In this document: positions 3,469 through 17,258 of the stretch, in pieces
Layout: every line of letters begins with the position of its first letter
Numbering within the stretch: the stretch's first letter is position 1
DNA from: Auanema rhodensis
Lineage: Eukaryota; Animalia; Nematoda
Length of the DNA stretch: 64,000 nucleotides
Assembly (NCBI GenBank): GCA_964057225.1
Contig: OZ059899.1
Coordinates: 13,950,001-14,014,000, forward strand
Direction: 5' to 3'
Notes under the pieces: generated by a model
Told to the model about the DNA's origin: nothing
What the model saw: the letters and a program-made list of their open reading frames with translations, nothing else
Databases searched by the model: none
Program-made: the position numbers and the translations under genes

Positions 3469-3902
3469 ATTCTGAAAAAAATTAGGGTTTATTTGATAAA
3501 TAGCTTTTCAGCTTCAAAGTTATCAAGTATTTGGTAACGAAACTTGGTAAAAAAATTAGTCCTAATGAGGAAAATTATCAAAGTGGTAACATTTATACTA
3601 TTTCATGTATAGTAAGTTTGCTATGCAGACATGTTTCAACAGAATTTTAGTTAAATATTTCAAAGCTAGATATTTAGCTAAAAATATAGCTCCTGCCAGG
3701 CTCTTTATGAAATTTAAAAACTATAGGTACGTAAATGCGAACGCATTTTCAATTTCACGCATTTTTAGTTATTATTCGAATATGGATAGTTTAGTCATTT
3801 GAAGCTTGAATAGCTTGTTCCACAATGCTAGAACATTATCAGATGATCCATTCGAGAAATATTAAACTATAATATGTACTACTATTGCTAAATTTTTCAG
3901 GT
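3469..3902. promoter_or_regulatory. Short divergent (likely bidirectional) promoter between sig-7 and the GCFC homolog
   Basis: Head-to-head ATGs at 3468 (-) and 3903 (+), each directly preceded by a TTTTCAG acceptor. Confidence 0.6.
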
Positions 3903-11947: not shown

Positions 11948-13828
11948 TCAATCACTACGTGCTCCCTCATCTTCGTCACTTGAAGAATCGTAATTCTTGC
12001 GAACGAAGTTAGCATAGACAAGTGTCTCCGTCTGCAATTCATACATAAACTCATGAAATGGTTGTAACTGCTTTCTAACCTCGAGACGTACAAACTGCAA
12101 GTTGGTACGACGATATCCTGGAAGTTCACGATCCCATAATTGCTGCTGAGCATCTTTGCCTTTGACAGAAACATCATTAGCAAATACAGTCATGAGCAGC
12201 TTTCCAGGTCTATAAGCAAAACATATTTCATGTTTATTGTTTCTTTCATTTTAAATCATTATTTTCAAAAACAAAAAACATATGTTGATTATGATGTAAT
12301 TTACCTGAAAGTGTTGATAACTTTCTTTGTCTGTTTGTAAAGACACCAGCTATCTTGGTTTGTTTCGAAAGAAGCAAAAGAGAATGCTTTTTCGGGTGTT
12401 ACATGGATTGTGGCATATTGGTCTGAGTTTGTCTTATAGGCATTCATGCTGTAGCCACAAGGATCAAAAAGTTCGTCCTGAATTTCAAAGTCGGATGGCA
12501 TCAAGCGATCTATGCCGGATCGCTCAGTACATTCCTTAGCATCATCACAAGCTTCTCTTGTGAAAGTTTTCATCACATTTTCGTCCAGATCCGTCATGAG
12601 AATCTCCAAAGTGCTGTCCTAAACAGAATAATATTTTATAATTTCAATTCATATTGATTCAATTATATTATATTTCCAGCAATTATATCAATATGTATGA
12701 TGATTGAAATATTCCTTTCGATCACATCGAATACAATCAGCTTATTGGATTATATGTTTGAATGAACACGAATAACGCGTGAATATGAAACTTTTTGAAT
12801 AGAAGCCTCAACTTACAGCTGTTTTCTGTGGAAGTGGCTGTTGTTGAATGTGCATAGTATAGAGATACCAGCGATCTTGCTTCAAAGATCCCATACAATA
12901 TGCATGTCCACCTGAAAAGTTCAAGTTTCGATTGTGATTACATCAAAAAAAAAAGTTTGTTCATATTTCGCTTGCTTTCAAAACATTGATCTTATCTTTT
13001 TCTTCTCGTAGTATATTATTATCTTTAACTATTTGACAGTTGTTTGAATGAAAAAAAAAACGTGAGTGGGAGCATTCATAAAACAAAAATTTTGATACGA
13101 AATTTGGCTGACCTTTAATCTCATTTCAAACGAAATAAATTTGATATGAGTTGACATTTATCAACGAAATATAATATATTAATGTCTTTTTGATAAATGC
13201 TTATCTAAGTGATCAGAGTAAAAACGGATTAATTAGTATATTTTATGAAAAAATGATAAAAAAATTGCATACCATCGAAGAAAGAGTCCAAGTACTGAAC
13301 TTCAGAATCAAAATTATAATGCAATTCTGGTTGAAGTTCAGGTCTAAGGAAATTTTTTCTTGAATAATAGACACTAACGACCTGAAATATGGTTAGGTTT
13401 AGGAAGATTAAAATATTATTATCGAACCTTGTCAAGCTGAGCATACTGATCAGCCAATTTAAGAATGACTGGAAGAGCATCGAGAAGTCTTGTAGCTCCA
13501 CATGTCTTCATAATAAGTCGGTGATCAGATACAAACAAGCTGCTTTCACTAAAACAGAAAATAAGTAAGTTGAAAGCTAAGTTTTGATATACCTCAAAAC
13601 ATAGCTGTCAAGGTCTTGCTGATGAGAAGATTGAAGAATCTTGCATCTAGCAATATCTAGCATGGCATCAAGCTCATGTCTTGGAATATCACGAAGAGAA
13701 CAGTTTTCCAAGCCTTGGCTATTGTCGAACCATAACTCTAAGAGCTTCTCAGCTCCTTCAAAGAAGTATTCGTCGACTGAACTGGCCAACTCAGTCACAG
13801 CAGTTTGGGTAGCTATTTGAACGGACAT
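11948..13828 (-). CDS. smd-1: S-adenosylmethionine decarboxylase proenzyme (AdoMetDC/AMD1)
   Basis: FFEGAEKLLELWF, self-cleavage site YVLSE/SSLFV, KTCGAT, YSRKNF, FDPCGYSMN, TIHVTPEKAFSFASFETN. TGA at 11950-11948. Confidence 0.98.
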
Positions 13829-13982
13829 CTGAAGATTGAAATTAAAAATAAGGGTTCTGTAGATAGTTTACTTACTGTTTTTCCTGTATTTTCTGCGAAA
13901 TGGAAGTTAATTATCAACTGAAGATCGGTAATACGATCAAGTTCGAATGTAGGTAATGTGTGTGATGTAAAACTCGGACCCG

Positions 13983-14036
13983 CTAAGGAGGACGAACGTG
14001 AAGGACGAGGATTTGGGTCTCAATATCTGGACCCAT
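13983..14036 (-). promoter_or_regulatory. AUG uORF of smd-1, 17 aa: MGPDIETQILVLHVRPP*
   Basis: ATG 14036-14034 to TAG 13985-13983. It is the only AUG in the leader, is out of frame with the main ORF and ends Pro-Pro-stop. AdoMetDC mRNAs of mammals and plants carry regulatory uORFs. Confidence 0.85.
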
Positions 14037-14155
14037 ACAACCCTGAAAACAAACAAAATGTGAAACACGTTTTTATGAATTATTTTGTATGCAAGCATTA
14101 AATTTTTCCGAATGAACAAGCACAAAAATTTGTTTAAAAAAAAAACAAAAGTTTA

Positions 14156-14239
14156 TGTCATCCGCAGGATTCGAACCTGCGCCCTCCGGAGAGGACTGCG
14201 ACCTGAACGCAGCGCCTTAGACCACTCGGCCAGAATGAC
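14156..14239 (-). tRNA. tRNA-Leu(CAG), within intron 2 of the smd-1 5' leader, same strand
   Basis: GTCATTCTGGCCGAGTGGTCTAAGGCGCTGCGTTCAGGTCGCAGTCCTCTCCGGAGGGCGCAGGTTCGAATCCTGCGGATGACA: A and B boxes, long variable arm, CAG anticodon, downstream oligo-T terminator. Confidence 0.97.
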
Positions 14240-14287
14240 TCTACTAAACGGCATAGAAGACATGGTAGACAAGCAAACCTCTTCTAG

Positions 14288-14524
14288 TCAGCGAAAACGA
14301 GCTTTGTAGTCTCCGCGATCTACTTTTGGTGGAATATCTTCTGCCCAAAGGAACAAACCACACGAGGAATGGGACCACGTGGGGGTAGAGAAATTAGCTT
14401 TGGTGTCTTTCAACAGCTGGATTTTGTCTGCTATTGACCTGAACAACAGTGGGATCAGAATAAGTTTGATATATCAGTGATTATACCAAGATGGGCTGCG
14501 TAGGGCTGTTAGATACCCTGTCAC
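14288..14524 (-). promoter_or_regulatory. AUG-less upstream ORF (candidate GUG start at 14524) ending UGA-CUAG, in frame with the 17-aa uORF
   Basis: Spliced frame VTGYLTALRSPSWSIADKIQLLKDTKANFSTPTWSHSSCGLFLWAEDIPPKVDRGDYKARFR*, bounded 5' by an in-frame TAG (14566-14564), with no ATG. It continues UGA CUA GAA GAG/GGU UGU AUG. Confidence 0.6.
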
Positions 14525-17164
14525 AGCTCCTCTAGTCGGTGAGTTAACAAGTAGAAAGTGAGACTATAGAAGCCTGAAAAGTAAGATTGTAAGTTGAAAA
14601 GTTCAGAGATCAAGAGATCAAACAAATCGGAGGAAATAGCAGAAAGACATGATGCATAATATGAAAGCTATGAAAATAAAATTTGATTATGAGATCAAAA
14701 ATGAATAAAAGTAGAATCGAGTTCTTGAATATATAATCAAGATATTCCAATCCCCCTGCATTATAGAAAAAGTTTAACATCAATCAAGCTGGTTAGCATG
14801 GAATTAAACGGAAAATGTTTCCAGCTCAGTTTAAGATTGAATGCTTTTTGAACATTTTTGAAAGGAAATTATCTTAAGGGGATGCTCTAATGAGCTTTGA
14901 AGATGACATGGGTTGGCTCCACATGAGTCGAAAACGAAAACTGAGCTATTGTTCAAAGAAATAGAGAAACATGATGAGGACATAAAAGATCTGATAATGG
15001 TGGAACTTGTGCTCTCTCGGAGAAAAATGTTTCTGAAATATCGTCTAAAACGGAAACACTTTAAAGCAACAACGAGAAAAAATGGGCGGGAGTATATCTA
15101 TCAAAGATAGAGAGAAAGAAAAATATACAGGGAGAGAGGGAATGAGCAAGGAACAGAGGAAGACAGAAAAAACAGAATAAATAAGGGCGTGCGAGCTAGA
15201 TATATGGATAGTGAGATAGAAGACAATATATATTGAAGAATTTCTGGGAATGGATTCGTATGGCTTCATCTCGTTCACGTAAGACTGGTAAAAGACAACA
15301 AGCTTCCATTTTTGATGAAACTTTTGGAAGAGAAGCAACATGAGAAGTCGCAAATGAATAAGTAGGTTAGGAGAGACAGGAGAGGCAATGAGGTGTAGGA
15401 AGAAGACATACCACTTTCAAATGAAACATGAAGTAAGAAAAAACAAAAAAAATGTTCTTTCATATGAAATAGAAACGGAAAATGGACGAAGAAGGAAAAA
15501 GCAGGAAAGCGAGGTAGAGCCAGAGAGATATATTGGAGAAGTTAGAGTGTGCGAAGGAAACATAATGAACGATAGGAGAGAAAGAGATAGAGAGAGAGAG
15601 AAAGAGAGAAAAGAAAAAGAAAAAAGAGAGAGAGAGAGCTCTTTTAAATAAGAAGAGACATGAATAGACATCTGATCGATTTAGCAGAGCACATTGGAAC
15701 TAGGAGAAGGGGAATACCCCCTTTCTCGGTTCCTATGCCATTCCCAGCATGTATTGCCTGTTGTGGAAACTACGTCACTTCATGCTACATCATAGCTCTA
15801 ACCCATTATTTTCTAAGAAGCATTATATCCATTTCTATATTATCAGCTTCTTAACATCTTTGAGATTTTCTGGGGTACTACATCTCCTATTCTGATTCTA
15901 TCTTTTGATTCGTTTTTTACTTCCCTTCGAGACACAAGCATGTATAATCATATATGTATGTATGACAAGACAAATGAGAAAAAAAATAGAGGTTGGATAA
16001 GAGAGGGATAGGGAACAGACCAAGAAAAAGGAGAAAGAACGAAGAGCGTTCGCCAAAAAACAGCTGTAAGCTTGGCTCTTTTTCGTTCCTCCTTCTCTTT
16101 CTCACAAGCGAATGTTCATTCGTGGCATATTGGCTGTTTTGCTCATTTTTCTCCCATTTTTTTGCTTTTTCGCTTGTTCTTGAGCTTTTCATGTTCCACC
16201 ACGTCAAAACTTATGTATTTTGGTAGTCTCTCTCCCTCTCTATCTCTATCTCTCTCTATCTTGATGGCCAATGTGCAACAACATGCACAAAAAGAGAATG
16301 ACATATACAATATAGAAAATAGTTGTATGGAAAAATCGGATGAAAAGAAACTTTCAGTTATGATGGAGCGAAAATACTCAGAAACGATAATGGGTAATGA
16401 AAGAATGGTAAGATAAAACTTGAGCACACGTGAGGGTTTGGTGATATCATCTAGGCTTGACTTGATTACACAATACGGCCGTCACATTATCGTTATTGTC
16501 TGAGTATGTCAACCACGTCAAAGGTTTCAGAAGATGACAAAAAAAAACTTTTGAAGATCATTTGACTCACAGACGTCATATCTCTAGAATACATAACAAT
16601 AACTGGTAAAGAAGTGAGAGAGAGAGAGAGAGAAAGAGAAAAAAACGAGAAAAATCTCTGTCAGTTGGCAAATATCAGCTGTTTTGTGAACAACTACAAC
16701 AAAATAATTTAAAATTTGAAACACATTCATTGTCTATCCAACTGGAAAAAAAATGAAATTTTAAAAATGTATTTGTAAAAATGGCTTAATCGGTCTGGAC
16801 ATGTATTCTTGCCGACCCTGTCTCTCGTCTATAACAAAAAAAGTCGGAAAACAACTAAGCTGGATAGTTTATCCGACGAAGACATGTTGATTACGATGGC
16901 TTCAGCCTTGGAGATAAGCTTGTAGTAGGTCTGTTGTGTTTTCAAAATGGTAGAAAGCTGGCAAAAGGAATGTGGAAGAGGGAACGAAGGAAAAATGGAT
17001 AGCGAATCCGAAACTGACGGAACATGTATGTTTATTTGGTTCAAAACGACTTTGTTCTTGTGATTGTGGCTACTGAAAGGAGGTAGATGGGGTATAGAAT
17101 TCGTGAACATACTCTTAGCAAAAGTAATAAATTGAAAAAATAGAATGTTAGATGGAGTGCATTA

Positions 17165-17172
17165 CTCTCTCC

Positions 17173-17258
<86 letters not shown>
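17165..17258. repeat. (CT)n microsatellite, ~94 bp
   Basis: Near-perfect CT dinucleotide run. Confidence 0.95.

Follow-up and report, generated by a model that had tools for sequence, protein, structure and literature searches.

A conserved hairpin around the start codon of an upstream open reading frame in the nematode smd-1 leader, a candidate element tuning its use

S-adenosylmethionine decarboxylase (AdoMetDC) is a rate-limiting and tightly autoregulated enzyme of polyamine synthesis, and the upstream open reading frames (uORFs) of its mRNA are a textbook case of metabolite-sensing translation. The AdoMetDC cases described so far have been accounted for by properties of the nascent peptide and by where the uORF lies. 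Repression through slow termination at a Pro-Pro-stop end under high polyamines follows from what is established on the AdoMetDC and AZIN1 uORFs and on eIF5A. Except in vertebrates and sea squirts, AdoMetDC uORFs as a rule have proline as their penultimate residue, and non-AUG uORFs were treated in the same work (PMC2811004). The C. elegans gene, smd-1, has been treated as uORF-regulated and polyamine-responsive, and its uORF as a feature that elicits nonsense-mediated mRNA decay (NMD) (PMC13578949, PMC10557752). We analyse here the smd-1 leader carried on the minus strand of a 64,000-nucleotide stretch of Auanema rhodensis contig OZ059899.1 (positions 13,950,001 to 14,014,000; hereafter the window, to whose positions all coordinates refer unless another contig is named), and in particular a predicted hairpin, named H1, that contains the start codon of the second of two consecutive uORFs, uORF1 and uORF2.

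Some systems outside the AdoMetDC family are also close to this arrangement. Kozak, in 1990, is said to have found that a hairpin placed downstream of a weak-context AUG boosts initiation at that AUG, with an optimum about 14 nucleotides (nt) after it. Ivanov et al. reportedly described in 2018, for antizyme inhibitor/ODC-like mRNAs, a non-AUG upstream conserved coding region (uCC) in which a polyamine-sensitive Pro-Pro-Trp pause is associated with ribosome queuing. The Type II stop codon read-through signals consist of UGA-CUA or UGA-CGG and, beginning 7-9 nt further on, a stem that has at least 11-12 base pairs (bp) (PMC3159437). A limited literature search (PMC2811004, PMC2075485, PMC13578949, PMC10557752) found no description of a start-codon hairpin, a helix joining the two uORF stop regions or a post-stop CGGGUC element.

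The gene was recognised by its main open reading frame (ORF), whose AUG is at 13828 and whose first exon and a later exon match the Pfam family SAM_decarbox (PF01536; E = 3e-16 and 2.5e-31); the closest database protein is that of Auanema sp. JU1783. Tentatively, we read H1 as a selected RNA element that tunes the use of the weak-context uORF2 AUG in nematode smd-1 mRNA. The second uORF, MGPDIETQILVLHVRPP followed by a stop, has 17 codons (13983..14036, minus strand) and starts in the weak context UUGU-AUG-G. It lies in exon 2, which starts at 14042 on the minus strand and begins GGUUGU AUG GGU CCA. The exon-2 part of H1 (14007..14042, minus strand) consists of GGUU, the bulge GUA, UGGGUC, the loop CAGAUAUUGA, GACCCA and AAUCCUC, and the three remaining bases, GAG, are the last of the preceding exon (14281-14279, minus strand), which ends at a GU donor at 14278. 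The 7-bp lower stem pairs GAG plus GGUU (14281-14279 and 14042-14039) with AAUCCUC (14013-14007), and the 6-bp upper stem pairs UGGGUC (14035-14030) with GACCCA (14019-14014), with the bulge at 14038-14036 and the loop of 10 nt at 14029-14020. Of the AUG (14036-14034), the A sits last in the bulge, and the U and G begin the 5' arm of the upper stem. The original prediction had given this anatomy, a UGA and CUAGAA followed by a hairpin of 7 plus 6 bp with a 3-nt bulge, a 10-nt loop and an AUG straddling bulge and upper stem; joining 14279 to 14042 reproduces that RNA, and the coordinates agree.

When the spliced 42-mer was folded, as had been proposed with the prediction, RNAfold returned the 7 plus 6 bp hairpin with two extra pairs within the loop, at -18.8 kcal/mol. 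Dinucleotide-preserving shuffles of the same sequence had a mean of -9.05 and a standard deviation of 2.44 (z = -4.0), and only 2 of 1000 were as stable. The 39-nt core has an energy of -17.1 kcal/mol, which is matched by 13 of the 25,586 39-nt windows taken from both strands of the 64 kb (about 0.05%). Without the three exon-1 bases, the fold is an ordinary one (-10.6 kcal/mol, z = -1.5), and the pairs that span the exon junction therefore matter for the stability of H1. The pair probability of H1 is 1.0 in the predicted fold of the entire mature leader of the window, and the mature cDNA leaders of a strongylid and of a Caenorhabditis fold alike (-16.6 and -17.3 kcal/mol; z = -2.4 and -3.2).

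The splice that would bring the two parts of H1 together crosses an intron that contains a tRNA gene, and we infer it from orthologues. In the window, the leader exon with the 3' part of uORF1 (14279..14438, minus strand) ends in CGC UGA CUAGAAGAG before the donor, the uORF1 stop UGA occupies 14288-14290 in the context UGA-CUAG, and the spacer CUAGAA (14287-14282) separates it by 6 nt from the stem. The putative intron of 236 nt (14043..14278, minus strand) has the donor GAG/GUUUGC and the acceptor UUUUCAG/G, with its AG at 14044-14043. An Auanema relative has an equivalent exon with an identical UGACUAGAAGAG/GU end, a tRNA-Leu in the equivalent intron and a matching acceptor before GAUUGUAUGGG, and its leader exon is 86-100% identical to that of the window. 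A strongylid genomic contig (L005) reads CAUUCAAGAG/GU, then a 120-nt intron without a tRNA, then CAG/GGUUGUAUGGG, and a cDNA contig of another strongylid (L009) shows the spliced junction itself, CACUCAAGAG-GAUUGUAUGGG. C. bovis has a predicted 46-nt intron at the equivalent place, also without a tRNA. In cDNA contigs of Caenorhabditis, Ascaris, Pristionchus and an oxyurid, the uORF2 exon runs on into a long upstream leader. Thus, the statement of the prediction that the hairpin spans a splice junction and comes to lie beside the UGA only after removal of the tRNA-containing intron appears right in its anatomy, the splice being deduced from the relatives.

The tRNA gene itself was identified by ARAGORN as a tRNA-Leu(CAG) at 14156..14239 on the minus strand, co-oriented with smd-1 and with a T-run behind it. 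Such a sense-oriented tRNA-Leu(CAG) is present in the smd-1 leader intron of the window and of the Auanema relative (L007, ~3685-3770) and absent from the strongylid and C. bovis introns.

A different anatomy was considered and rejected as the main form, namely SL1 trans-splicing at 14042, with the UGA as the stop of another gene further upstream. The cDNAs of relatives join the uORF2 exon to a homologous upstream leader exon, and the upstream ORF, which has no Pfam match, is a leader ORF conserved with the Auanema relative. A minor SL1 isoform at 14042 may exist, and SL1 at this position would restore the identical 7-bp lower stem, as SL1 ends in GAG.

The same region could in principle act before splicing, the stem in the unspliced RNA modulating the use of the 3' splice site, for example between cis-splicing and SL1 trans-splicing at 14042. 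The intronic AG and the following GGUU can pair with AAUCCU, the unspliced fold retains the upper stem together with a lower stem of 6 bp in which the acceptor AG takes part, SL1 genes number in the thousands in this organism, and the GAG end of SL1 would rebuild the lower stem. However, all five cDNA contigs that reach the uORF2 exon extend into the upstream leader and SL1 is joined to that exon in none of them; the single SL1 tail observed, in the oxyurid (L018), is at the far 5' end, upstream of both uORFs. Moreover, the conserved portion of the hairpin is the upper stem, which lies 8 nt within the exon and in register with the AUG, so that we regard such a pre-mRNA role as very improbable.

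The uORF2 peptide places H1 in a known context. RPP-stop orthologous uORFs were found in 14 other nematode or nematode-like leaders, including those of Auanema (MGPDIKTQILVLHVRPP), strongylids (MGPDIETLILVLYRRPP), Caenorhabditis (MGPDRKTRILVLYRRPP and MGPEIKTRIIVLYRRPP), Ascaris (MGPYKTLILVHHRRPP), an oxyurid (MGPFKALILIHHRRPP), Pristionchus (MPAVINIFLVRFRPP), Bursaphelenchus (MGAEPLILVHYCRPP), Wuchereria (MNNPCKIIIIFHHRRPP) and Trichuris (MGTDLEHTFFGHRERPP). RPP-stop uORFs were likewise present in metatranscriptome contigs. Four nematode-like leaders (L020-L023) came from a protein-based scan, and a DNA pattern scan of metagenome contigs for the 3' end of the uORF did not find it. The uORF2 of the window is short, lies in an AdoMetDC leader and encodes a conserved peptide with a penultimate proline; judged by these sequence features, it is an AdoMetDC conserved-peptide uORF. 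Its AUG context, UGU-AUG-G with a pyrimidine at -3, is weak and conserved. A C directly after a stop codon is a weak termination context, and this C is present at uORF2 in all the leaders examined and at uORF1 in 8 of 9, the exception being the Caenorhabditis cDNA L008, with a U.

One cDNA contig of a rhabditid SAMDC (L019, P0163; positions 1-166 of the contig) has a leader of 166 nt without any AUG and without an RPP-stop uORF, and is either a 5'-truncated contig or a uORF-less isoform.

The conservation of H1 was analysed in eight orthologues whose uORF2 is of the MGP type, from Rhabditina, Ascaris and an oxyurid. All eight have the upper stem GGGUC/GACCC, in which 91.7% of the cells of the alignment pair, and no other helix remains in the RNAalifold consensus calculated from nine leaders. 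The register between stem and AUG is constant in every species that has H1. Synonymous change was scored as parsimony steps on an assumed species tree, comparing the three third positions of the upper stem with 11 unpaired ones. The third positions of Gly2 (GGU), Glu/Lys6 (the G of GAG or AAG) and Thr7 (ACC) showed no step, whereas the 11 unpaired third positions averaged 1.7 steps, and the chance that three random positions are all invariant is 4/560 (permutation, P = 0.007). Between the window and the Auanema relative, none of the 16 uORF2 codons differs synonymously, compared with 18 of 61 in the main ORF and 8 of 17 in uORF1 (Fisher P = 0.016 and 0.003, respectively). The amino-acid replacements sit in the loop (D/E, I/R, Y, F); only the oxyurid has one in a stem codon, where Ala for Thr leaves U-G in place of U-A. 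In species whose uORF2 has a different N-terminal half, the hairpin is missing and the C-terminal RPP-stop is retained. For the MGP group this suggests that the constraint on the N-terminal codons is one on the RNA and not on an arrest peptide.

Several observations nevertheless weigh against H1 as a selected element. The eight orthologues represent some 5-6 independent lineages. Covariation across nematode orthologues, a check proposed with the prediction, did not appear, as none of 10 pairs had changed on both sides; pairing-preserving changes were one-sided and affected three upper-stem and two lower-stem pairs (U-A to U-G, G-C to G-U and G-U to A-U). The support for H1 is therefore conservation and not covariation, and conservation alone proves little because both arms of H1 are coding. 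Synonymous change is suppressed at the paired positions of the upper stem and not at those of the lower stem, which is poorly kept: its third positions took 4 and 1 steps, 75% of its cells pair, and its form GAGG/CCUC occurs in three rhabditid lineages, C. bovis and Ascaris being arranged otherwise. At the uORF AUG of Pristionchus, Wuchereria, Bursaphelenchus and Trichuris, folding gave nothing significant (z near 0), and H1 must be dispensable for the core mechanism, because Pristionchus, the filariae, Bursaphelenchus and Trichuris keep the uORF without it. The conservation of the pairing thus held for the upper stem of the MGP-type orthologues, in part for the lower stem, and not for these four genera. 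In addition, the GACCC arm of H1 can pair with a second GGGUC after the uORF2 stop in a competing helix, H2, which has a probability of 0.34 in one Caenorhabditis leader and in which 85% of the cells pair. Finally, the frozen sites may reflect the start context from +4 to +6 or codon choice instead of pairing.

This last point belongs to the most serious of the alternatives, that H1 has no RNA function of its own and is a by-product of the conserved N-terminus (MGP..ET), of preferences for the bases at +4 to +6 around a start and of codon usage, the GAG of exon 1 being a common exon end. The lack of compensatory double substitutions is what a by-product would give, as is the coding nature of both arms. 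Pairs across the junction are cheap, since exons commonly end in AG and SL1 in GAG, and folds of exon 2 alone are unremarkable (z from -0.8 to -1.6). ACC, AAG and GAG are, in addition, favoured codons in well-expressed nematode genes. However, GGU is not the favoured glycine codon of nematodes and yet the Gly GGU is invariant in all eight orthologues, and the adjacent loop codons vary both synonymously and in amino acid, which the stem positions do not. It is with the C-terminal residues, located in the exit tunnel, that an arrest peptide acts, and in other nematodes the N-terminal half of uORF2 varies freely. The synonymous divergence of uORF2, moreover, is below that of both uORF1 and the main ORF. 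Taken together, we consider the by-product explanation less probable than a selected element, though one that deserves serious weight.

Upstream of H1, uORF1 (ending in EDIPPKVDRGDYKARFR and a stop) covers 14288-14438 of the minus strand and continues in a further exon upstream, near 14487-14575. Its frame stays open over at least 75 codons and contains no AUG, and a Pfam search with it gave no match. Over its last 17 codons, all eight differences between the window and the Auanema relative are synonymous and in third positions. Its C-termini across nematodes end in DYKARFR, RTRFR, RSRFR, DFKQRYR, YKERYS or YKEKYS, and the pattern (D/G)(Y/F)K.(R/K)(F/Y)(R/S)-stop is recognisable from the rhabditids to Ascaris and the oxyurid. 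The rhabditid uORF1 is without an AUG and that of Ascaris and the oxyurid starts with one. In these two species (L010, 85-141, and L018, 132-188, respectively) uORF1 is an AUG uORF of 18 codons. Its start context is UUGU-AUG-C in Ascaris, matching that of uORF2, and UUGC-AUG-C in the oxyurid, and its distance to uORF2 is 21 nt in both.

The vicinity of H1 to the uORF1 stop had led to the proposal that the stem-loop stimulates read-through of the UGA, by which uORF1 ribosomes would be carried in frame into uORF2 and uORF1 would be fused to the RPP-stop arrest peptide. The window and the Auanema relative do have a UGA-CUA(G), a 6-nt spacer and a 13-bp stem that resemble the Type II signals (PMC3159437), in the window the frame is shared by the UGA and the uORF2 AUG, whose distance is 15 nt, and no stop interrupts it between them, and the weak C after the uORF1 stop is nearly general. 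The comparison of the leaders speaks against it. The spacing from the uORF1 stop to the uORF2 AUG is 15, 15, 16, 16, 23, 21, 21, 42 and 17 nt in nine leaders, so that about 3-4 of 6-7 lineages are in frame where 1 in 3 is expected by chance. One Caenorhabditis (cDNA contig L008) has the tandem stops UGA-UAG, and the in-frame spacers of Ascaris (QLLPARC) and the oxyurid (QSKLCYC) encode unrelated peptides. The CUA after the stop is limited to the window and the Auanema relative, the other leaders having UAG-CAU, UAG-CAC, UGA-UAG, UGA-CAA, UGA-CAG or UGA-CAU. We found, therefore, neither a conserved UGA-CUA or UGA-CGG context nor a conserved frame continuing past the stop. The distance from the stop to the stem also varies, from 6 nt in the window (13 bp) and about 7 nt in the strongylids to a distance beyond 15 nt in Ascaris and the Caenorhabditis cDNA, whereas the register of the stem with the AUG is fixed, and H1 therefore appears to belong functionally to the start of uORF2. 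Read-through as the function of H1 is improbable on these grounds, and a lineage-specific read-through in the window and the Auanema relative, though possible, is unlikely. The case illustrates that a motif resembling a viral read-through signal can arise where the comparative data oppose read-through.

For H1 as an element of the uORF2 start, the following sequence of events may be proposed. H1 would form in the mature cis-spliced leader, with the weak uORF2 AUG held in its 5' arm, and would be met by 43S complexes coming from the cap or by 40S subunits that resume scanning 15-40 nt past uORF1. It would then determine which share of the scanning or re-scanning 40S subunits initiates at the uORF2 AUG and which share moves on to the main AUG about 110 nt downstream, and thereby the gain of a polyamine-responsive uORF2 block, uORF2 most likely repressing through slow termination at its Pro-Pro-stop under high polyamines. 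Hairpins of -17 to -19 kcal/mol distant from the cap reportedly failed to block scanning 43S complexes in the experiments of Kozak. Because a hairpin of this stability does not by itself block scanning, the effect of H1 would be kinetic or would involve an exchange with the post-stop element, and simple masking of the AUG, a point that tells against the proposal in its plainest form, is a weak mechanism. The suggestion of the original prediction that the hairpin tunes AUG recognition appears to fit better than read-through, given the fixed register, the frozen synonymous sites and the conserved weak context. That H1 forms in vivo, that it shifts initiation in one direction or the other and that it responds in any way to polyamines are inferred.

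Ribosome queuing was set aside by reasoning only, as a uORF of 17 codons does not put a queued 40S subunit on the uORF2 AUG.

The post-stop element, CGGGUCCGAG (13973..13982, minus strand), contains the second GGGUC copy, and is thus an alternative partner of GACCC and the predicted partner of the 3' end of uORF1. The sequence UAG-CGGGUC(CG) directly at the end of uORF2 (13973-13985) is kept in nine leaders, including those of Pristionchus and Wuchereria, which have no H1. In the predicted fold of the window leader, H1 is enclosed by a long-range helix, named H0, whose strands are GCUCG..UUCGCUGA, where uORF1 ends, and UUAGCGGG..UCCGAGU, where uORF2 ends. With these features, H1 could be one arm of a larger ribosome-operated switch that includes H0 and an exchange between H1 and H2, in which a ribosome ending uORF1, or stalled at the uORF2 stop, would alter the availability of the uORF2 AUG. 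The predicted folds suggest such a switch: H0 is found in the minimum free energy (MFE) folds of the whole leaders of the window and the Auanema relative and in the RNAalifold consensus of five Rhabditina, its duplex energies of -8 to -11 kcal/mol in five Rhabditina leaders are among the lowest 0-9% of controls, the post-stop motif is conserved more widely than H1, and H2, which starts at +18 from the AUG, becomes the MFE structure in three leaders when the AUG arm is withheld. However, H0 is weak or absent in the strongylid L005, Ascaris, the oxyurid and L020, the CGC-UGA it uses is equally explained by the conserved peptide end RFR-stop, and H2 is just 5 bp over a 34-nt loop. Clean covariation is seen in neither helix, the two double changes in H2 both occurring in one divergent sequence and probably being due to chance. 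We therefore regard the switch as unlikely. A still bolder proposal, to which we give slightly less credence, is that H1, the stop-pairing helix and the duplicated GGGUC form one conserved RNA domain remodelled by ribosomes, which translation of uORF1 would open, thus deciding the use of uORF2, and to which the lineage of the window and the Auanema relative would have added the UGA-CUAG read-through. If true, this would make nematode AdoMetDC a structure-assisted two-uORF polyamine switch.

Downstream of uORF2, 155 nt of genomic sequence separate its end from the main AUG. A 47-nt intron of the 5' untranslated region, with the consensus ends GUAAGU and UUCAG, is predicted directly before the main AUG (13829..13875, minus strand), and once it is removed the main AUG has the A-rich context AAACA-AUG, unlike the UGU context of uORF2. 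The exon junction at this predicted intron would lie about 107 nt 3' of the uORF2 stop, which would make translation of uORF2 NMD-prone. Upstream of the leader, GA/CT dinucleotide microsatellites are found at 15576-15638, 16616-16652 and 17165-17258, the longest being (CT)47. The nematode genome that carries the window has a size of 181 Mb and contains SL1 genes by the thousand in tandem; approximately 3,450 exact copies of the 22-nt SL1 sequence are present, in tandem arrays with periods of ~252 and 341 bp (C3:6741531-6766485 and C3:14134320 onward), an unusually large SL1 gene complement.

If the tentative reading of H1 is true, a selected hairpin at the start of a uORF, beside a conserved ORF without an AUG, adds a layer of RNA structure to the AdoMetDC circuit, and provides a compact system, testable in C. 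elegans, for how local structure governs start-codon choice at a regulatory uORF. Compared with the known AdoMetDC (AMD1/SAMDC) systems, namely the mammalian MAGDIS uORF, the plant tiny and small uORFs and the metazoan uORFs with a penultimate proline, the smd-1 leader likewise has a short uORF with a conserved peptide, ending here in RPP-stop (PMC2811004), and, similarly to the plant tiny/small pair, it has two consecutive conserved uORFs. However, those systems are described as dependent on peptide and position, whereas the smd-1 leader has a hairpin at the uORF AUG with frozen synonymous sites, its upstream ORF is AUG-less in the rhabditids, and its two uORFs do not overlap and are 15-42 nt apart.

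With the Type II signals of alphaviruses, tobraviruses and furoviruses (PMC3159437), the window shares the UGA-CUA, a stem of 12 bp or more and a short distance between stop and stem, of 6 nt here and 7-9 nt there. The coding frame around the viral stems, however, is continuous and conserved, and compensatory changes support these stems (PMC3159437), whereas H1 tracks a downstream AUG, the downstream ORF has its own AUG, and neither the frame nor the distance from stop to stem is conserved. In the uCC of the antizyme inhibitor/ODC-like mRNAs, as in smd-1, the mRNA belongs to the polyamine pathway and carries a conserved upstream ORF without an AUG, here uORF1, and a Pro-Pro pause site, here in uORF2; the smd-1 leader differs in splitting the AUG-less ORF and the Pro-Pro-stop into two ORFs, and the uCC model does without RNA structure. 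The downstream hairpin of Kozak resembles the smd-1 arrangement in that a weak-context AUG has a moderate hairpin close by, and H2 would begin at +18, that is 14 nt past the AUG. H1, in contrast, is not a downstream hairpin in this sense, as the AUG lies inside its bulge and 5' arm, so that H1 must melt before the AUG reaches the P site.

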